Part shown: piece after piece, positions 1 to 60,502 of the stretch
Numbering within the stretch: the stretch's first letter is position 1
How the letters are laid out: every line of letters begins with the position of its first letter
From: Ylistrum balloti
Lineage: Eukaryota
NCBI RefSeq assembly: GCF_031769215.1
Contig: NW_026782617.1
Location: 124,001-188,000, forward strand
Length of the DNA stretch: 64,000 bases
Direction: 5' to 3'
Program-made: the position numbers and the translations under genes
The notes under the pieces: generated by a model
Seen by the model: only the letters and a program-made list of their open reading frames with translations
Database searches by the model: none
Told to the model about the DNA's origin: nothing

Positions 1-295
1 GACAAATTGATTGTTACTACATGTATACAGTATGAACAATGGACAAATTGGTTGTTACTACATTTATACAGTATGAACAAAGGACAAATTGATTGTTACT
101 TCATTTATACAGTATGAACAATGGACAAATTGATTGTTACTACATTTATACAGTATGAACAAAGGACAAATTGATTGTTACTACATTTGTACAGTATGAA
201 CAAAGGACAAATTGATTGTTACTACATTTATACAGTATGAACAAAGGACAAATTGATTGTTACTACATTTGTACGGTATGAACAAAGGACAAATT
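1..295. repeat. 41-bp minisatellite, ~7 copies (truncated by window start), intronic
   Basis: Unit GACAAATTGATTGTTACTACATTTATACAGTATGAACAAAG recurs at 1, 42, 83, 124, 165, 206, 247. Confidence 0.95.
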
Positions 296-447
296 TGTTC
301 CGTTACCCCGGTTGATATTTAGTATTTGTCTTGAATTTTACCTCAGACGCATGAAATCTGCATGCAATTAACATTCAGAAATACAAACAGTACGTTGATA
401 TTCATAAATTTCATGTTCAGTTTTCAAATACTTTGCATGTGATTCAG

Positions 448-519
448 AAATGTTACGTTCAGAAGATACGGACACACAATGGCCATGACAAGTACACTTC
501 CGGGTGTGTAAATAACCAG
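448..519 (+). CDS. Exon (phase 0-0) of LU/TSP1/FBG mosaic gene: middle of three-finger-like module 1
   Basis: ttcag|...|gtaggt boundaries; 72 nt, KCYVQKIRTHNGHDKYTSGCVNNQ; same pattern (xC...SGC) as exon 1769-1834. Confidence 0.85.
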
Positions 520-757
520 GTAGGTCACATCATGTAAATGGTCATATATCTCCTATCATTATCTAGTTTCTAATTTCAAATTATCCTTTCCATCAGTGAT
601 TCGTATAGAGCTGGAGAGTTATCATATTTTTCTTTCATAAATGATTACTCCATCTCTGTTCCTGTTTAATCAACTTCATTTCATATTTTCATATTTAACG
701 AAAATTGCGTTTTGTAACTAAGTTCCATGAACAATAACCATTCTTGTTATTCTGCAG

Positions 758-878
758 AGCTGTTCTTTAGATACCAATTTCCACGGTTCGTTTGGAGAAC
801 TATCACCTTACGGACAGGTGACGTGTGTCGAGTGTTGTGATGGAGACATGTGTAACAACCAAGGGTGTGGGGATACAG
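758..878 (+). CDS. Exon (phase 0-1): C-terminal part of three-finger-like module 1
   Basis: ttctgcag|...|gttcgt; SCSLDTNFHGSFGELSPYGQVTCVECCDGDMCNNQGCGDT with the LU-type CCxxDxCN signature. Confidence 0.9.
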
Positions 879-1217
879 GTTCGTGTACCAGTTAAAACAG
901 ACAACCCTTTTCACTGTTTTATCTTAATTAAGCAAACCTAAAGACATTTCACGGTATGTGATCTCAAAACCAGCAGTCTATATTCTTTGAATGAAAACAT
1001 GTTATTTTTTTCAGAAACTGAACCGTGACATGGAATCAGTTCTATTTGTAACTTCGGCAGAGTTTATAAAACTTAAAGACCTTTGTTGAACTGTTCACTT
1101 TTTTCGGCTGCTTTAATTACAAATCATAATTGTGTTTGTGGGAATATTTTACACATTTTCTATACAGGAGTTATTTCTTTATCGTATGTTTATTGGTAAC
1201 TACTTGTGCTCCCTAAG

Positions 1218-1318
1218 GACCTCCAACTAGAGAATCCCGTGGACCTTACTGTTACCAGTGCCAGCACATGCCAGACCCGAGTTACTGTGAAAGGCTCACT
1301 ATTTGTGACAGCAATGAA
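1218..1318 (+). CDS. Exon (phase 1-0): N-terminal part of three-finger-like module 2
   Basis: ccctaag|...|gtatga; (G)PPTRESRGPYCYQCQHMPDPSYCERLTICDSNE, with the CYxC start typical of LU domains. Confidence 0.88.
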
Positions 1319-1442
1319 GTATGAAGTCAAACATTGCATACATTAAAAAGTATGGTATATATATATATAGATAAGTAATTTAATTAATGTGTGATTTTAT
1401 CACCAGTATTTTAGTCCATTATCATTTCTGGAGTGTTTGAAT

Positions 1443-1485
<43 letters not shown>

Positions 1486-1768
1486 CATAAGCTCACTCGT
1501 CTAGCTAAACCAATTTTTACGAGGGAGGGGGATAACCAGAACTGTCATCTCTCGCTTTTACTTTTTCGTTTGCATCTCTTTTACGATTGCTGCAAAAATC
1601 AAATGTTGGTAAGTAATCTTTTGTGATAAACATTAATCATCGTAAGGCATTCAAATTTATCAATTAAATTCATTCTCCTCGTGTCTGAAACGTTTAAAAT
1701 GTTTGAAAAATGTTAAGTATTGAATTATTGATGAAAGGTAAAATGACTATGATATGATTTTCGTGTAG

Positions 1769-1834
1769 GTTTGCAGTATTGACGAAACCGTGTCTTTTGG
1801 ACATCAGTTCTCAAGCGGGTGCAGGCGAAAAGGG
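1769..1834 (+). CDS. Exon (phase 0-0): middle of three-finger-like module 2
   Basis: tcgtgtag|...|gtctgt; VCSIDETVSFGHQFSSGCRRKG; phase fits both neighbours. Confidence 0.8.
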
Positions 1835-1873
1835 GTCTGTATTCTTCCATCCATTCACTTATTTACTTAACAT

Positions 1874-2028
1874 NNNNNNNNNNNNNNNNNNNNNNNNNNN
1901 NNNNNNNNNNNNNNNNNNNNNNNNNNNNNNNNNNNNNNNNNNNNNNNNNNNNNNNNNNNNNNNNNNNNNNNNNNNNNNNNNNNNNNNNNNNNNNNNNNNN
2001 NNNNNNNNNNNNNNNNNNNNNNNNNNNN
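1874..2028. other. Assembly gap (155 N) inside an intron
   Basis: Run of N; flanking exons join in phase without needing hidden coding sequence. Confidence 0.99.
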
Positions 2029-2082
2029 ATACGATGGGTAAATAGTACATGGTCATTTTACTTAGAAACTCGACTTTGACAG

Positions 2083-2212
2083 GAGTGTTTGCATGAAGGA
2101 CTCCTAGTGGGCCGGGATACCCATAATTTGACAAGGTCGTTCAATCTCTGCCACAAGTGTTGCTCCGAAGACTTCTGCAATCAAGATTGTCAGGATCACA
2201 AACCCCAACAAG
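2083..2212 (+). CDS. Exon (phase 0-1): C-terminal part of three-finger-like module 2
   Basis: ctttgacag|...|gtattt; ECLHEGLLVGRDTHNLTRSFNLCHKCCSEDFCNQDCQDHKPQQ with CCxxDxCN. Confidence 0.88.
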
Positions 2213-2313
2213 GTATTTATTTTATTGTTTTCATACGTGCGGGTGCTTTTGAATTTTCGTGAACAAAATTTTAAAATTCTAACCATGATTTACATTCTAC
2301 CATCACTATACAG

Positions 2314-2475
2314 AGATGGTATCTTGGAACGTGTGGAGTCCATGGAGTGAGTGCTCGACTTCCATTGGAGTTCAAATCCGGAACCGTTCATGTACAAATT
2401 CTAAAGGCGTGGTGCAATCACAAGGTTGTGAAGGGGTACCAAAAGAAGAACGAAATTGTTCCAGACTATGTTCAG
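2314..2475 (+). CDS. Exon (phase 1-1): thrombospondin type-1 repeat
   Basis: tatacag|...|gtaggt; (E)MVSWNVWSPWSECSTSIGVQIRNRSCTNSKGVVQSQGCEGVPKEERNCSRLCS, showing WxxWSxWSxCS and RxRxC TSP1 motifs. Confidence 0.92.
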
Positions 2476-3104
2476 GTAGGTCTATATAAATCAGAGTTGG
2501 TTGTATGGACGAATCGTCGTCATCGTCTTTTAACAAGTGTTACAGATCTTAAGATACAGTATAAAATCATGTTAATTTCAATACAACTTCTTCTTTAAAC
2601 CATTCAGACTTCATCCATGGAATTTGCTAGACAAATATCCCTCTTCATGCATTTCGGTTGATCAGTAGAAGTCGTATGAGTATTTAGACAAATTTGACTG
2701 GGGTGATTTTGTGCAATGATCAAAGTCAGACGTTAGAGCATTTTCATAAATTTAACTCATAACCTTGAATATGAATGAAGGTTATTACTTTTCACACTAT
2801 TTGTGAATTTTCAAATGTTCAAAACCTCAGTTCTTATTAGGAAACTTTTCGCTTTGGCGATGGCATCTTCAAGCAAAATACCTATTTTCAATTCTTTTCG
2901 TTTCATCAGCAGAAGTCACTCGAACGACTAACAAAGGATCCCTGTTACCTTAGATACGGATCGATGTAACTTTCTTTCGGTTATCGAGGGTTTTATCCCA
3001 AGAACCTTACAGCACAAAAGCAAGATTCCAGGCCAAAAATTGCAAAAATTCTTATCCAAGCAGGGGTTAGAGCATTTCACAAATTTGACAAACAATCTAG
3101 AATA

Positions 3105-3309
3105 TACGATGGCCGAAATCGGCCTGACAAAACTGTGTAACTAGTAGCACATTTTCGTCAACAAAATATGTACGAACACATTTTTTGTACAAATATGTTC
3201 ATTACTATAGTAGTAGATTTATTTGACACAAAAGGTGTTCGTACATATTTTGTTGACGAAAATGTGATACAAGTTACACTGTTTTGTCAGTCCGTTTTCG
3301 GCCATCGTA
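3105..3309. mobile_element. Foldback MITE (~205 bp, long TIRs, TA at both ends; Tc1/mariner-like by TA termini) in the last intron of the FReD gene
   Basis: Left TACGATGGCCGAAATCGG...ACAAAACTGTGTAAC...CACATTTTCGTCAACAAAATATGTACGAACAC is the near-perfect reverse complement of right GTGTTCGTACATATTTTGTTGACGAAAATGTG...GTTACACTGTTTTGTC...TTTCGGCCATCGTA; second copy at 52.8-53.0 kb. Confidence 0.85.
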
Positions 3310-3870
3310 AGAATATGAGTCAAGCTAATTTCTTTTCGAATGAATGTGAATTTTCCTAATAGAAAACTTTCAGTTAATTTATGTCTTTTTGTTTATCAGA
3401 AGAGGTCCTTTCAGTATTTAAACACATTTGACCAATGGGACTTGAACTGTAGATAAAGATAATCTATTCTTGTACAATTTTGTTCGGTTCTGTGCCTTAA
3501 AATCATCAAAAAGACATCATTTAAGTGTTGTAGCAAATTCACTCATGTAACCTTTCATATGGGTCAAAGTAAATTTTTAAGGAAACATTTTCGAGTCTTA
3601 TTCCAGAAACACATCAGATAAATATTGTAATTTCGGCTTTTAGAAGAAATCATTTGAAACTTTTAACAAATTTTGGCCTCCTCAAACTTTATCGGACTTC
3701 AATTAGGGAACTTCCCAGTTATACATGTCAATATAAACCTTGACACGGCAGGAAAGGTGAACTTTAAAGTAAAAATTATTACTACAGAAATTCTATAAGC
3801 ACTTTTTCATGCTTGCTGTTTGTCAGATTGCTATACAAGAGTTGAATTGTTTTTTTTTTCCCGACTGAAG

Positions 3871-4472
3871 GTTGTGTTGAATTGTACAACAGCGGAACAC
3901 GTGATTCAGGTGTGTACACCATAGCTCCCCCCGGACACCAGCCTCTGAAAGTCGTCTGCAACATGACGGACGGAGGAGGATGGACTGTACTTCAACACAG
4001 GTACGACGGCTCTGTCACCTTTAATCGTACATGGACAGACTACGTCACGGGTTTTGGTGATCTACATGGCGACTTCTGGTTTGGTTTAGAAAACATTCAC
4101 ATGCTTACATCACAGGGAGTCCAAGTCATAATAGATATGATAACAATTACCGGGAAGTCGATACGGTACAGCTACGATCACTTTGAGGTAAAGGACGCCA
4201 GCACATCGTATCAACTGTCAGTTTCTAATGATACTTCTGTATATGGTAGACGTGAACAAAGATTAGAATATAACAACGGTCATATCTTCTCTACCCCTGA
4301 TAGACCGGATGAACACAAATGTTCTTCTCACGGTTCGGGCTGGTGGTTTAAATATTGTACATATTTCAATATCAACGGTATCATAGGCCTGGTTGAGAGT
4401 GACTATGGACTGGCAATAAGAGACGGTGTTATGGATGTTTTACTGAATGAAACAATCATGAAAGTAAGGTAA
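3871..4472 (+). CDS. Terminal exon: fibrinogen C-terminal (FBG/FReD) domain
   Basis: Poly-T tract + gaag acceptor, phase 1; GCVELYNSG...SGVYTI...VVCNMTDGGGWTVLQHRYDGSVTFNRTWTDYVTGFGDLHGDFWFGLENIH...FSTPD...GWWFKYC..NING...IMKVR*; AATAAA at ~4562. Confidence 0.95.
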
Positions 4473-5438
4473 CTGTTGTTGATTTATTACTAATTTAATG
4501 CTGAACAACGGTATATCTGCACACGCCTGTCAATTCCCCCTTGATTATATATAAGATAATCAATAAATATTTTTTTTTATTTTTTTTTATTTTTTAGTTT
4601 TTATTATTCATATTTATTTCTGTAGTCATCGTTTCCTTATCATCCCAAAGAGGTCAAACTACAGGTTCTGTAAGACACAGTCACATACCAACGAACATGG
4701 ACTTATTTGACCGTGACGTTTTGTAGAGTGAAAACAAACCATGTTGTACTAATTAAAATGATTAAAAGATTACAGTCAACATACTAAGTGGTACCATTTT
4801 TTTCCTGTGTAGTAACTTTACATAAATGAATATATATGCTTTAAAAAGATCAAAGTTTGGTACTTTTGTTCACATTACTGGAAAAAAATTTCCCGAAAAA
4901 GTTATCCATGAATCTTGACTATATAAAATGCGATGGTGGTTTGCAGACTGGCATTCGTCTTTCACGTAAGCGAGATTGTACAAAAGACAAATAAGTGAAC
5001 AGCACCTTTTAACACAATTTTACAATGAATTAAGCTGCATTATGCAGCTGTTTGAAGCCTATGGGCTACTAAGGCAAATCCAAAGTGGTCAAAAGAAAAG
5101 TAAAAATCTAGACGGGGAGTTGTAACATCTCCTTAATCAAATTAATCTCGTAATTTTGATATATAATTTTAGAACAGCGTCAAGTACATGTGTATATTCT
5201 GAACCGTGCCACTATTCGACTGCATTAAAACGGGGACTTAAAGTCCACCAGCAGTGTCTACAGACAAAAAAAGCACATGTGAATAGTACCTAATATCCAT
5301 TTATTAAACATGGCAATTGGGGGATTACAGCTCATAGAATGATATTAAAATGTAATAGAATCACATGAACATTTGTTTTTTTCCTATCATTCATTCATTT
5401 TCTTCGTGTAGATAATCTCAATAGAACAGATCAGGTCT

Positions 5439-5686
5439 GATGAAGGTGACCGTGTAGTCATAGAAACGTCACACTCTAATCTTCTAATGGTTTTGTTATA
5501 AGATGAAGGTGACCGTGTAGTCATCGAAACGTCACTCTCTAACCTTCTACTGGTTGTGTTATAAGATGAAGGTGACCGTGAAGTCATCGAAACGTCACAC
5601 TCTAATCTTCTGCTGGTTGTGTTATAAGATGAAGATGACCGTGTAGTCATCGAAATGTCAAACTTTAAACTTCTACTGGTTGTAAT
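5439..5686. repeat. 63-bp minisatellite, ~4 copies
   Basis: GATGAAGGTGACCGTGTAGTCATCGAAACGTC... at 5439, 5502, 5565, 5628; explains the repetitive ORF 5387-5650(-). Confidence 0.9.
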
Positions 5687-8590: not shown

Positions 8591-9114
8591 TACAGTGTTG
8601 AACGAGAGTCCTCTTGCATGAGGACATAATTACACACATGCTGAACCCAGGGCCCCAACCCTGGCAGTAGTCTATATGTTTACATGTTCTGGGGCATTTA
8701 AACACACGAGAAACGTTTCTTCCTTTGCTTCAAAGCATATCTTATAGGGAAAGAAGCTGCGGCGGTTACCTTTGAATCCATATCATGTACAACCTACAAT
8801 CCCGTAACTCCACATTTTATAGACAATTTTTTTTTTGAAAGTCACTATATACATAATAGAATTAATTTTTACCGTTTGATTATTTTTTTTTACCGAAATC
8901 CGGTCAATTTTATCCGGAATCAAACAGACTTGGTCTAAGATATTGGTTCTGTTACCTATAGTTGATTTCCAGTACAGGAACTATTTTTCCTCTTCACCAG
9001 ACTTGATACTTCCAGGGGTAGATCTGACAATTCGGGGCGACCCTGTTTCAATTTTTTCTCAGTAGTTTTAGATCTGTTATTATTTTTGATCATGCCGAGT
9101 ATTGATGTTTGGTA

Positions 9115-55230: not shown

Positions 55231-56405
55231 TTTAGAAATCCCTTTATGTCTGGTACAGGTCTTAGAGCTTAGAAATCCCTTTATGTCTGGTACAGGACTA
55301 AGACTTTAGAAATCCCTTTATGTCTGGTACAGGACTAAGACTTTAGAAATCCCTTTATGTCTGGTACAGGACTAAGACTTTAGAAATCCCTTTATGTCTG
55401 GTACAGGACTAAGACTTTAGAAATCCCTTTATGTCTGGTACAGGACTAAGACTTTAGAAATCCCTTTATGTCTGGTACAGGTCTTAGAGCTTAGAAATCC
55501 CTTTATGTCTGGTACAGGTCTTAGAGCTTAGAAGTCCCTTTATGTCTGGTACAGGTCTTAGAGCTTAGAAATCCCTTTATGTCTGGTACAGGACTAAGAC
55601 TTTAGAAATCCCTTTATGTCTGGTACAGGACTAAGACTTTAGAAATCCCTTTATGTTTGGTACAGGACTAAGACTTTAGAAATCCCTTTATGTCTGGTAC
55701 AGGACTAAGACTTTAGAAATCCCTTTATGTCTGGTACAGGACTAAGACTTTAGAAATCCCTTTATGTCTGGTACAGGTTTCAGAGCTTAGAAATCCCTTT
55801 ATGTCTGGTACAGGACTAAGACTTTAGAAATCCCTTTATGTCTGGTACAGGACTAAGACTTTAGAAATCCCTTTATGTCTGGTACAGGACTAAGACTTTA
55901 GAAATCCCTTTATGTCTGGTACAGGTTTCAGAGCTTAGAAATCCCTTTATGTCTGGTACAGGACTAAGACTTTAGAAATCCTTTTATGTCTGGTACAGGT
56001 ATTAGAGCTTAGAAATTCCTTTATGTCTGGTACAGGTCTTAGAGCTTAGAAATCCCTTTATGTCTGGTACAGGACTAAGACTTTAGAAATCCCTTTATGT
56101 CTGGTACAGGACTAAGACTTTAGAAATCCCTTTATGTCTGGTACAGGACTAAGACTTTAGAAATCCCTTTATGTCTGGTACAGGACTAAGACTTTAGAAA
56201 TCCCTTTATGTCTGGTACAGGACTAAGACTTTAGAAATCCCTTTATGTCTGGTACAGGTCTTAGAGCTTAGAAATCCCTTTATGTCTGGTACAGGTCTTA
56301 GAGCTTAGAAGTCCCTTTATGTCTGGTACAGGTCTTAGAGCTTAGAAATCCCTTTATGTCTGGTACAGGACTAAGACTTTAGAAATCCCTTTATGTCTGG
56401 TACAG
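55231..56405. repeat. 37-bp minisatellite, ~31 copies, two interspersed variants
   Basis: TTAGAAATCCCTTTATGTCTGGTACAG + GACTAAGACT or GTCTTAGAGC; period 37. Confidence 0.97.
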
Positions 56406-58915
56406 GACTAGCTAATCACTGAAACCATTTATGTTTGGTACAGGACTAGCTAATCACTGAAACCCTTTATGTAATGGTACAGGCTAATCACTGAACCATA
56501 TAAAGTTTGATGTAATGTACAGCTAATCACTGAACCATATAAAGTTTGATGTAATGGTACAGCTAATCAGAGCTTAGAAATCCATTTATGTTTGATGTAA
56601 GGACTAGCTAATCACTGAACCATATAAAGTTTATGTAATGGTACTAGCTAATCACTGAACCATATAAATGTTAATATAAAACTACAGCAAAACACTCACA
56701 CATATTAATGTGGAGGTAATGGTCTAGCTAATCACTGAACCATATAAAGTTTGATGTAATGGTACTAGCTAATCACTGAACCATATAAAGTTTGATGTAA
56801 TGTCTGCTAATCACTGAACCATATAAAGTTTGATGTAATGGTCTAGCTAATCACTGAACCATATAAAGTTTGATGTAATGATCTAGCTAATCACTGAACC
56901 ATATTAAGTTTGATATAATTGTCCAGCTAATCACTGAACCATATAAAGTTTGATGTAATGGTCTAGCTAATCACTGAACCATATAAAGTTTGATGTAATG
57001 ATCTAGCTAATCACTGAACCATATTAAGTTTGATGTAATGGACTAGCTAATCACTGAACCATATTAAGTTTGATATAATGGACTAGCTAATCACTGAACC
57101 ATATAAAGTTTGATGTAATGATCTAGCTAATCACTGAACCATATAAAGTTTGATGTAATGGTCTAGCTAATCAGAACCTAAGTTTGATGTAACTTCTAGC
57201 TAAATCTGAACCATATAAAGTTTGGTAAGGACTAGACTTTAGAAATCCCTTTATGTCTAGCTATCACTGAACCATATAAAGTTTGATGTAATGATCTAGC
57301 TAATAGAAATCCCTTTATGTCTGGTACAGGACTAAGACTAATCAGAAATCCCTTTATGTCTGATATAAGGTCTTGATGAAACCATATTATGTCTGATGTA
57401 AGGACTAGCTAATCACTGAACCATATAAAGTTTGATGTAATGTAAATAGCTAATCCTAGAACCTAAGACTAATGGTCTAGCTAATCACTGAACCATATAA
57501 ATTTGATGTATGTCTAGCTAATCACTGAACCATATAAGTTTGATTAAATCCCTTTATGAACCATATACAAGTTTGATGTAATGATAGCTAATCACTGAAC
57601 CATTTAATGTGTAATGGTACTAGCTAATCACTGAACCATATAAAGTTTGATGTAATGGTCTAGCTAATCACTGAACCATATAAAGTTTGATGAAATCCCT
57701 AGCTAATCTGAACCATATAAAGTTTGATGTAATGACTAGCTAATCACTGAATCCCTTTTGATGTAATGATCTAGTATCAGGATAAAGTTTAGAAATCCTA
57801 GCTAATCACTGAACCATATAAAGTTTGATGTAATGATCTAGCTAATCACTGAACCATATAAAGTTTGATGTAATGGTCTAGCTAATCACTGAACCATATA
57901 AAGTTTGATGTAAGGAGCTAATCACTGAACCATATAAAGTTTGATGTAATGGTCTAGCATCACTGAACCATATAAAGTTTGATGTAATCCCTAGCTAATG
58001 TCTGAACCATATAAAGTTTGATGTAAGGACTAGCTAATCACTGAACCCTTAAGTTTGATGTAATGATCAAGCTAATCACTGAACCATATAAAGTTTGATG
58101 TAATGGTCTAGCTAATCACTGAACCATATAAAGTTTGATATAATGATCTAGCTAATCACTGAACCATATAAAGTTTGATGTAATGAATCTAGCTAAGGAC
58201 TGAACCATATAAAGTTTGATGTAATTCTAGAAATCCCATATAAAGTTTGATGTAACTAGCTAATCACTGAACCATATAAAGTTTGATGTAATGTCTAGCT
58301 AATCACTGAACCATATAAAGTTTGATGTAAATCTAGCTAATCACTGAACCATATAAAGTTTGTAAGACTTACAAATTAATGTAATGAGTAATGGACTAGC
58401 TAATCCAACAATCATATTCTGACTAGCTAATAAGAACATATAAAGTTTGATGTAATGAAAAATCTAGCTAATCACTGCCATTTGATTTTCATTTAATATC
58501 ATCGAGCTGAAACTGTCAGCCATGTAAAGTTTGTACAGTTAAATAAAACCACTGAGCCAATTAAAGTTTGATTTATTGTCTAGCTAATCACTGAACCATA
58601 TAAAGTTTGATGTAATGATCTAGCTAATCACTGAACCATATAAAGTTTGATATAATGGTCTAGCTAATCACTGAACCATAGTAAGTTTGATGTAATGATC
58701 TAGCTAATCACTGAACCATATAAAGTTTGATGTAATGGTCTAGCTAATCACTGAACCATATAAAGTTTGATGTAATGATCTAGCTAATCACTGAACCATA
58801 TAAAGTTTGATGTAATGATCTAGCTAATCACTGAACCATATAAAGTTTGATGTAATGATCTAGCTAATCACTGAACCATATAAAGTTTGATGTAATGATC
58901 TAGCTAATCACTGAG
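56406..58915. repeat. 40-bp minisatellite (~2.5 kb) with a chimeric, degraded central zone
   Basis: AGCTAATCACTGAACCATATAAAGTTTGATGTAATGATCT, clean at 56.8-57.2 kb and 58.6-58.9 kb; fragments of the 37-mer embedded between. Confidence 0.95.
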
Positions 58916-58989
58916 GCATTTTAAGTTTTAAGATGGAAAAAATTTTGTCTAGATTTTGTCTAGTCACTAATAATCTTATATGGAAGCAT

Positions 58990-60502
58990 ATGGTGTCTGT
59001 AATCCCTACATGGAGATCAATTCAGTGATGTCCCGTCTTCCCTACATGGAGATCAGTTCAGTGATGACCCATCTTCCCTACATGGAGATCAGTTCAGTGA
59101 AGAGCCATCTTCCCTACATGGAGATCAGTTCAGTGATGACCCATGTTTCCCTACATGGAGATCAGTTCAGTGATGACCCATCTTCCCCTACATCGAGATA
59201 AGTTCAGTGATGACCCATCTTCCCTACATGGAGATCAGTTCAGTGATGACCCATCTTCCCCTACATCGAGATAAGTTCAGTGATGACCCATCTTCCCTAC
59301 ATTGAGATCAGTTCAGTGATGACCCATCTTCCCTACATCGAGATCAGTTCAGTGATGACCCATCTTCCCTACATTGAGATCAGTTCAGTGATCACCCATC
59401 TTCCCTACATGAAGATTAGTTCAGTGATCACCCATCTTCCCTACATGAAGATCAGTTCAGTGATCACCCATCTTCCCAACATTGAGATCAGTTCAGTCAT
59501 AGCCCATCTTCCCTACATTGAGATCAGTTCAGTGATGACCCATCTTCCCTACATGGAGATCAGTTCAGTGATCACCCATCTTCCCTACATGGAAATCCGT
59601 TCTGTGATGACCCATCTTCCCTACATGGAGATCAGTTCAGTGATGACCCATCTTCCCTACATGGAGATCAGTTCTGTGATGACCCATCTTCCATACATGG
59701 AGATCAGTTCAGTGATGACCCATCTTCCCTACATTGAGATCAATTCAGTGATGACCCATCTTCCCTACATGGAGATCAGTTCAGTGATGACCCATCTTCC
59801 CTACATCGAGATCAATTCAGTGATGACCCATCTTCCCTACATGGAGATCAATTCAGTGATGACCCATCTTCCCTACATGGAGATCAGTTCTGTGTGACCC
59901 ATCTTCCCTACATGGAGATCAGTTTGGTGATGACCCATCTTCCCTACATGGAGATCAGTTCAGTGATGACCCATCTTCCCTACATTGAGATCAATTCAGT
60001 GATGACCCATCTTCCCTACATGGAGATCAGACCAGTGATGACCCATCTTCCCTACATTGAGATCAGTTCAGTGATGACCCATCTTCCCTACATGGAGATC
60101 AGTTCAGTGATGACCCATCTTCCCTACATGGAGATCAGTTCAGTGATGACCCATCTTCCCTACATGGAGATCAGTTCAGTGATGACCCATCTTCCCTACA
60201 TTGAGATCAATTCAGTGATGACCCACCTTCCCTACATGGAGATCAGTTCAGTGATGACCCATCTTCCCTACGTGGAGATCAGTTCTGTGTGACCCATCTT
60301 CCCTACATGGAGATCAGTTCTGTGTGACCCATCTTCCCTACATGGAGATCAGTTCTGTGTGACCCATCTTCCCTACATGGAGATCAGTTCAGTGATGACC
60401 CATCTTCCCTACATGGAGATCAGTTCTGTGATCCATCTTCCCTACATGGAGATCAGTTCAGTGATGACCCATCTTCCCTACATGGAGATCAGTTTGGTGA
60501 TG
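58990..60502. repeat. 36-bp minisatellite, ~42 copies
   Basis: GTGATGACCCATCTTCCCTACATGGAGATCAGTTCA; source of the (VMTHLPYMEISS)n ORFs. Confidence 0.97.

Follow-up and report, generated by a model that had tools for sequence, protein, structure and literature searches.

Which gene lies behind an isolated exon for a fibrinogen (FBG) domain near the start of a long genomic stretch, and what could its product do? This question is raised by 64,000 nucleotides from the genome of the bivalve Ylistrum balloti (C760:124001-188000), hereafter called the window, whose list of open reading frames (ORFs) contains from the gene in question only this last exon, as an ORF of 196 amino acids. Positions given without a contig name are window coordinates. 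Here, we show that seven exons at the upstream end of the window, termed A to G, are one real, intact multi-exon gene which is already modelled in RefSeq as LOC132560862. The predicted architecture of the product is (signal peptide)-LU-LU-TSP1-FBG, i.e. two LU modules of the three-finger type, one thrombospondin type-1 (TSP1) repeat and a C-terminal FBG domain, the signal peptide being known from orthologues.

The exons were translated singly, and GT/AG borders and intron phases were read directly off window positions 1-5200 (Table 1). GT donors and AG acceptors are found throughout; the donor of exon D (GTCTGT at position 1835) is weak. The RefSeq protein of the locus (P0005, 469 amino acids, annotated as "uncharacterized") maps onto the window with 100% identity and covers exactly exons A to G, which encode its residues 53-469, plus one exon upstream of the window. 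The original prediction, made from the bare sequence, had spliced seven exons with GT-AG borders and the same phases into one gene with a single open frame that runs from an LU module (partial in the window) through a second LU and TSP1 to FBG, and had noted that only the FBG exon is visible as an ORF. In all of these points it coincides with the P0005 model and the ORF list.

Comparison with related loci gives further support for the gene. Collinear exon series occur in the same genome at C771 and C776 (exons A to G) as well as at C235 and C389 (exons A to E and G, without F), with amino-acid identities of 40-82%, and also in Pecten maximus. Exon A is 71% identical to its counterparts at C771 and C776, and P0005 as a whole is 80% identical to the orthologue from Mizuhopecten yessoensis. 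Relative to the paralogues, the exons show 0.16-0.39 non-synonymous differences per site while synonymous differences are saturated (0.65-0.97). Furthermore, the sequencing run X1, which consists of DNA contigs from another haplotype or individual than the assembly, holds an allele that keeps the frame, all of its exons being free of indels and stops. Judged by these comparisons, the exons are coding sequence under constraint. In P. maximus, the RefSeq protein P0002 (TSP1+FBG, 338 amino acids, named 'SCO-spondin-like') runs ...CGDTGPPPRESRGPYCYQC...SSGCRRKGECLHEG... and thereby joins exons B-C-D-E-F-G in one chain. This RefSeq model starts at exon B and is N-terminally truncated, since exons for the first two thirds of LU module 1 (LU1) lie upstream of it at L015:7831-7908 and 8600-8671.

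Table 1. Features of LOC132560862, its surroundings and its paralogous loci in Y. balloti
Feature	Position	Strand	Phase	Content	Remark
Exon A	448-519	+	0-0	LU module 1, middle third (KCYVQK...SGCVNNQ)	P0005 residues 53-76 at 100%
Exon B	758-878	+	0-1	LU module 1, last third, with CCxxxxCN motif (CCDGDMCN)	Paralogues 72-78%
Exon C	1218-1318	+	1-0	LU module 2, first third (CYQC...YC...IC)	Paralogues 58-82%
Exon D	1769-1834	+	0-0	LU module 2, middle third	Peptide identical in P. maximus
Exon E	2083-2212	+	0-1	LU module 2, last third (CCSEDFCN), followed by short linker	
Exon F	2314-2475	+	1-1	Single thrombospondin type-1 repeat (WNVWSPW...RNRSC)	
Exon G	3871-4472	+	1-stop	Complete FBG domain, C-terminus ...NETIMKVR and stop	Pfam Fibrinogen_C, E 3.7e-43
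AATAAA	4562-4567	+		Likely polyadenylation signal, about 90 bases past the stop codon	Read from sequence
RefSeq upstream exon	C760:123209-123343			657-791 bases before the window	P0005 at 100%
Assembly gap (N run)	1874-2028			Inside intron D/E, between D donor (1835) and E acceptor (2082)	
Inverted partial duplicate of 2029-2648	L006:5917-6538 = C760:119917-120538	-		About 3.5-4.1 kb before the window	
41-bp satellite	1-295			Last part of an array some 930 bp long, continuing in L006:9365-10000	Tandem Repeats Finder
Hairpin inverted repeat	3105-3309			Intron F/G	84-nt arms, 92% complementary
63-bp tandem repeat	5439-5683			About 1 kb past the stop codon of the gene	3.9 copies
Three adjoining satellites (37, 40, 36 bp)	55231-60502			Cover 5 kb	
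Paralogous locus	C771 (P0009)			Exons A-G	
Paralogous locus	C776			Exons A-G	
Paralogous locus	C235			TSP1 exon missing	
Paralogous locus	C389			TSP1 exon missing	
Paralogous locus	C735			LU exons only	Within the 20 kb read

The D/E intron is interrupted by an assembly gap. An additional coding exon is not expected there, since orthologues and four paralogues join D straight to E. In detail, exon D ends and exon E starts in phase 0, the junction ...SSGCRRKG/ECLHEG... (the slash marking the border) is unbroken in the proteins of P. maximus and M. yessoensis, and E is the next exon after D at C771, C776, C235 and C389. Gap-free DNA of P. maximus has the same exon order with a D/E intron of 2.1 kb. 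Moreover, the 12 cysteines of LU1 recur in LU module 2 (LU2), and confidence is high across the D/E junction in the structure model described below. No contig of X1, the only public run with the stretch, spans the gap, and we infer the continuity of the DNA from the conserved gene structure.

Assignment of the FBG domain is certain at the sequence level. The Pfam family Fibrinogen_C (PF00147) matches with 148.4 bits against a cut-off of 22, covering profile positions 5-186 of 221 and leaving the last 35 positions unmatched, and the domain matches PDB sequences of tenascin-R, ficolin-1, ANGPTL4 and angiopoietin-1 with E-values of about 1e-31. Both conserved disulfides are present, as the cysteines in GC...VVC and KC...YC line up with those of tenascin-R, ficolin-1 and tachylectin-5A (TL-5A). 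For exon F, the TSP_1 family (PF00090) scores 20.7 bits, just under its cut-off of 21.6, and the WNVWSPW and RNR motifs are found. This repeat has five of the usual six cysteines because a deletion of four residues takes out the one at the 'TCG' position; the relatives P0010 and P0012 pass the TSP_1 cut-off with 29.1 and 31.4 bits.

The five LU exons are too short to be informative singly, and Pfam searches with each of them gave nothing useful, so that the LU assignment is based on P0005 as taken from the database, on its relatives and on the fold. UPAR_LY6 (PF00021) is the best Pfam family for both modules and is matched over nearly the whole profile (positions 4-81 of 82), with scores of 22.0 bits for LU1 and 18.2 bits for LU2, below the cut-off of 24.8. 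Among 116 relatives of the cassette, 18 match UPAR_LY6 at E <= 1e-5, the best with 4e-12. An AlphaFold model of the LU-LU pair (residues 26-218, 108 aligned relatives) reached a predicted local distance difference test (pLDDT) value of 87.9 and a predicted template-modelling (pTM) score of 0.80. When this model was compared with the PDB by Foldseek, the best matches were uPAR, C4.4A, CD177, TEX101, PSCA, GPIHBP1, Lynx2, Lypd6, activin/BMP receptor ectodomains and three-finger toxins. Nearly all of the best matches listed are LU or three-finger proteins, with a probability of 1.00 for the top uPAR chains and template-modelling (TM) scores by target of 0.49-0.72 for single LU domains. Both modules also carry the C-terminal CCxxxxCN motif. 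The label "LU-like" given to them originally was right, as the confident model and its matches to uPAR, C4.4A and CD177 attest. A model of the full-length protein (pLDDT 80.9, pTM 0.50; 81-97 in FBG and 62-79 in TSP1) fits an arrangement like beads on a string.

The upstream end of the gene lies outside the window. The product of the RefSeq upstream exon, AGPQCFACSSIPRLEFCDYFTQCEEGE, forms the first third of LU1. The DNA directly before AGPQ is a pyrimidine tract ending in CTGACAG, and for this reason the true acceptor of the exon is probably located at C760:123264 in phase 1, giving a predicted exon of C760:123264-123343, 657-736 bp before the window. In M. yessoensis and another scallop, typical signal peptides immediately precede AGPQC (e.g. 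MASLILVSGLLFYHICLVFT), and signal peptides are present in P0006, P0007, P0008 and P0011. Since the upstream exon completes LU1 and the signal peptide of the orthologues abuts this module, the number of LU modules is exactly two, where at least two had been proposed, and further LU modules upstream are rejected. The upstream extension suggested at the time thus delivered the exon completing LU1, and neither further modules nor a convincing exon for a signal peptide. The chain, which ends with the FBG domain, contains neither a transmembrane segment nor a hydrophobic tail suited to a glycosylphosphatidylinositol (GPI) anchor. As the orthologues carry a signal peptide and a membrane anchor is absent, the product of LOC132560862 is likely secreted, in line with its first description as a secreted-type protein.

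The DNA before the window holds a second, inverted copy of exons E and F with their introns, which is 97.9% identical in DNA and 100% identical in protein to window positions 2029-2648 and lies 5.5 kb upstream. Homology begins at the first base after the assembly gap and ends 170 bases into intron F/G; exon G is not part of the copy. The copy is due either to an inverted duplication that is real and recent or to an artefact of the assembly adjoining the scaffold join. At a distance of 600 bases from this copy, a remnant resembling exon B was observed on the minus strand (L006:7081-7191; identity of 77% for DNA and about 53-64% for protein). The two are not separated by any C or D exons, and the remnant is probably a degraded fragment of a paralogue. 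The 41-bp satellite array with which the window opens sits in the intron that separates exon A from the upstream LU1 exon.

To place the gene in a wider context, at least five further loci with the exon series were found in the Y. balloti genome (Table 1), and the LU-LU pair was compared with 1.84 billion cluster representatives. This search yielded 357 clusters at E <= 0.001, 177 of them at E <= 1e-10, and the pair was nearly always matched as a single unit. All 29 named sequences among 30 representatives looked up originate from bivalves and Haliotis, the thirtieth being a Logan contig. By these matches, the LU-LU cassette is a mollusc-wide module. Its partners in 116 cluster representatives are Lectin_C (18), IgGFc_binding (15), Fibrinogen_C (12) and EGF (6), followed by the rarer MIB_HERC2 (4), Ig (3), C1q (2) and VWA (2); Sushi also occurs. 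In about 15 of the best 150 cluster matches, local profiles place FBG after LU-LU, with one TSP1 repeat in between in P0132 and three in P0098. Named RefSeq sources of LU-LU-FBG proteins are Crassostrea virginica, Ostrea edulis, Mytilus edulis, Mercenaria mercenaria and Dreissena polymorpha as well as scallops of four genera, M. yessoensis among them, and the form with TSP1 is also found in Dreissena. A search of bivalve proteins for the same architecture therefore did recover it, as LU-LU-(TSP1)0-3-FBG in scallops, oysters, mussels, clams and Dreissena, and it is not unique to one lineage. The idea of a lineage-specific invention, part of the original prediction, is ruled out by the LU-LU-FBG proteins of these many bivalves.

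The exon-shuffled origin proposed together with it stands. Modules bordered by phase-1 introns are the classical signature of 1-1 module shuffling. Here, a phase-1 intron is located at each module border, namely between signal peptide and LU1, LU1 and LU2 (B-C), LU2 and TSP1 (E-F), and TSP1 and FBG (F-G), and both LU modules are split alike into exons of phase 1-0, 0-0 and 0-1. Paralogues and orthologues have 0, 1 or 3 TSP1 units, and they can stay in frame because all module borders are in phase 1. This pattern indicates that the family originated from the shuffling of modules with phase-1 introns on either side. In a tree of 19 LU-LU-FBG proteins, whose alignment includes the TSP1 columns and may thereby help the grouping of TSP1-bearing proteins, those from scallops form one clade (100/99) that is sister to a scallop protein without TSP1, and a TSP1-bearing pair from Dreissena is placed apart. 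As the two groups are separate, the TSP1 state changed at least twice. Dreissena isoforms differing by about 54 residues suggest a cassette use of TSP1 exons in this genus. The RefSeq names in the family (SCO-spondin-like, angiopoietin-like, fibroleukin, techylectin-5B-like, semaphorin-5A-like) are automatic transfers from single domains and misleading.

What, then, could the protein do? We hold it to be probable, with moderate confidence, that LOC132560862 is an LU-LU-TSP1-FBG gene of a multi-copy bivalve family whose product is a secreted soluble recognition protein with an FBG head and an LU-LU adaptor. It would be released into haemolymph or mucus, where the FBG head would attach to a ligand carried by microbes or cells, probably in another way than through the classical acetyl pocket of tachylectins and ficolins. 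The rigid LU-LU unit would form the adaptor or effector end and contact a host partner; this is suggested by its predicted rigidity and by the fact that it is shared with other lectin heads. The single TSP1 exon might contribute an optional spacer or an extra binding unit. In the original prediction, a lectin-like FBG head could be coupled to three-finger modules that bind receptors or channels and to a TSP1 repeat that binds glycosaminoglycans. In favour of a recognition role, the partners of the cassette include Lectin_C, IgGFc_binding, Fibrinogen_C and C1q (see above), lectin-type heads being the commonest, and scallop FBG proteins that have been studied bind pathogen-associated molecular patterns (PMC11741071). 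In addition, the assembly and X1 differ in exon G (3873-4469) by nine non-synonymous changes to one synonymous change in codons 111-199, as opposed to 0:3 in codons 1-110 (one-sided Fisher p of about 0.014, calculated by hand from one run and few sites). This distal excess may reflect allelic diversification of the ligand-binding half.

Several observations weigh against this reading. Among the public runs no RNA run carries the stretch, its sole holder being the DNA contigs of X1. No convincing signal-peptide exon was detected within 20 kb upstream, either by hydropathy and donor phase or by similarity to orthologous signal peptides; the scan gave weak and unconvincing candidates at C760:120833 and C760:110379. 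The N-terminus of the RefSeq model P0005, MTLNMIQVTYTSPQNILFCYYKVLT, is not signal-like and in part resembles the 3' end of an intron, and the region upstream is rearranged, with a satellite and the inverted E/F copy. Furthermore, three cysteines of orthologues and paralogues are absent from LOC132560862 in alignment A1, namely the one at 'TCG' in TSP1 and a family-specific FBG pair (SVNC and MAxxC), both members of which are replaced. Due to this loss, the predicted protein has an odd number of cysteines when counted from AGPQC, after the presumed cleavage site of the signal peptide. As for the ligand, TL-5A holds acetyl groups in a pocket of Tyr210, His220, Tyr236 and Tyr248 and binds calcium through Asp198 and Asp200 (PMC11741071). 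When the FBG domain is aligned to 1jc9_A, Tyr210 is replaced by His, His220 by Thr and Asp198 by Pro; Asp200 is kept, and the calcium loop is three residues shorter than that of TL-5A. Two of the four pocket aromatics can be aligned and both differ, Tyr236 and Tyr248 lying beyond the aligned part. Because of the altered pocket and the shortened calcium loop, a ligand other than simple acetyl groups is likely. An immune role is only a prior expectation, as domains of the FBG and TSP1 types likewise take part in adhesion and signalling.

These points can be read in other ways. The protein could have the same architecture and act in the extracellular matrix, in adhesion or in signalling, similar to tenascins, angiopoietins or Ly6 modulators, during development, in the nervous system or in the shell-forming mantle. 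This is a possible but rather unlikely alternative. The nearest solved FBG structures include tenascin-R, ANGPTL4 and angiopoietin-1 beside ficolin-1, the classical acetyl pocket is not conserved, TSP1 and LU are common in matrix and receptor-modulating proteins, and the cassette is also joined to EGF, Ig, VWA and Sushi. Indirect arguments against it are that the coiled coil of angiopoietins and the EGF or FN3 domains of tenascins are missing, that the cassette prefers lectin-type heads, and that a multi-copy family with an FBG half that varies between alleles is typical of bivalve immune lectins. We consider it improbable that LOC132560862 is a non-functional or decaying paralogue which lost its first exon or promoter by the upstream rearrangement while its orthologues and paralogues are functional. 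The missing signal-peptide exon, the inverted exon E/F duplicate with the 930-bp satellite, the lost cysteines and the weak donor of exon D would be compatible with such a decay. Against it, none of the eight coding exons is interrupted and their GT-AG sites are intact, the second haplotype or individual keeps the frame and exons without indels or stops, identity to the M. yessoensis orthologue amounts to 80%, and the two FBG cysteines have gone together, as expected of a disulfide pair.

An artefact of the gene model, with the FBG exon as a separate gene or with a gap join that merges two genes or conceals an exon, is very improbable. It could be suspected from the inverted copy of 2029-2648, with its homology starting at the first base after the gap, and from the gap itself, which no contig bridges. 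However, exon G begins in phase 1 and has neither a start codon nor a signal peptide of its own, and the order A to G recurs in gap-free P. maximus DNA as well as at C771 and C776, where intron F/G measures about 240-370 bp. Proteins from four scallop genera continue through both junctions, and the upstream copy lies on the opposite strand and is without exon G.

FBG, C1q and C-type lectin genes number in the hundreds in bivalves, and the link between such heads and effector functions is largely unexplained. Some of these heads share a conserved, predicted rigid double three-finger cassette. We put forward as a speculation, which we regard as unlikely, that this cassette corresponds in molluscs to the collagen stalk of vertebrate 'defence collagens', i.e. 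a common N-terminal adaptor that was shuffled onto the three classical lectin heads (C-type lectin, FBG and C1q) and onto IgGFc-binding modules and links these different heads to one shared partner. The partner would be, for instance, a receptor on haemocytes, a protease or an interface for oligomerisation, and the Y. balloti gene would be an FBG-headed member with an added TSP1 spacer. Identification of the LU-LU partner would make a general question of mollusc immunity directly testable. The gain for the single locus is more modest: its gene model is correct, the number of domains has been put right and the family is seen in a wider context; the remaining interest lies in the unstudied mollusc-wide cassette and its preference for lectin heads.

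Apart from the gene, the window is marked by repeats (Table 1). The hairpin in intron F/G shows raised depth and many short contigs in run X1 and is probably an insertion resembling a miniature inverted-repeat transposable element. The neighbouring long ORFs of the window contain no credible Pfam domain. Weak matches to MgtE_N and other Pfam families in ORFs at 59280-60292 were dismissed as spurious, these ORFs being located inside the 36-bp satellite.

A literature search by orthologue accession and locus number retrieved no paper, and no bench study of any family member was found. The closest description is a recent survey by Paramonov, Shenkarev and Lyukmanova (2026, PMC13719153), which reports proteins combining LU with a fibrinogen-like domain (LU+FReD) or with C1q in molluscs as previously undescribed and of unknown function. 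Like the Y. balloti protein, the former have LU with a C-terminal FReD in a mollusc, and LU+C1q corresponds to one of the cassette partners found here. Unlike in the Y. balloti gene, neither a TSP1 repeat nor a fixed double-LU cassette appears in the text of that survey. The LU+FReD proteins likely belong to the family of the Y. balloti gene. The earlier statement that no combination of LU, TSP1 and FBG is known has to be narrowed: the LU+FReD pairing was already described, and the TSP1 repeat is absent from the text of that account. The original prediction had named an already described, widespread family as grounds for its refutation, and in part this applies.

Other known systems share single features with the protein. 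Most reported mollusc FREPs outside the gastropods contain only FBG, as summarized in a study on FREP of Chlamys farreri (2024, PMC11741071). AiFREPs of Argopecten irradians and CfFREP of C. farreri are likewise scallop proteins whose C-terminal part is an FBG domain, and these are secreted; CfFREP binds lipopolysaccharide, peptidoglycan, glucan and poly I:C, and its residues at the TL-5A pocket are also poorly conserved (PMC11741071). In contrast to the Y. balloti protein, they consist of FBG alone or with coiled coils, and none has LU or TSP1 (PMC11741071). The gastropod FREPs of Biomphalaria resemble it as a multigene mosaic in which beta-rich, cysteine-stabilised N-terminal modules precede a C-terminal FBG head. 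Their modules are one or two immunoglobulin superfamily domains, whereas those of Y. balloti are LU three-finger domains; P0005 gave no credible Ig-family match in Pfam, the chance-level hit to Big_8 (E 0.14) lying inside the FBG domain. Ficolins and TL-5A resemble the Y. balloti FBG domain in their fold, in the two conserved disulfides and in a portion of the calcium loop, but no collagen-like Gly-X-Y repeat as in the ficolin stalk was found in P0005. Angiopoietins start with a coiled coil, whereas the N-terminal 245 residues here form LU-LU-TSP1 and show no long helix in the full-length model. SCO-spondin is very large and comprises VWD, LDLa, EMI and many TSP1 domains; the relatives that bear its name, an automatic transfer from the TSP1 match, have 456-478 amino acids, one TSP1 repeat and none of the other domains. 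The best structural counterparts of the LU-LU model, uPAR, C4.4A, CD177 and TEX101, share with it the tandem LU arrangement and the CCxxxxCN motif. They are, however, GPI-anchored receptors without other domains, whereas the Y. balloti modules, with 12 cysteines each, are joined to TSP1 and FBG, and the predicted orientation of the two LU domains differs from that of uPAR-type proteins, with two-domain TM scores of 0.2-0.3 and a root-mean-square deviation of about 19 Å.

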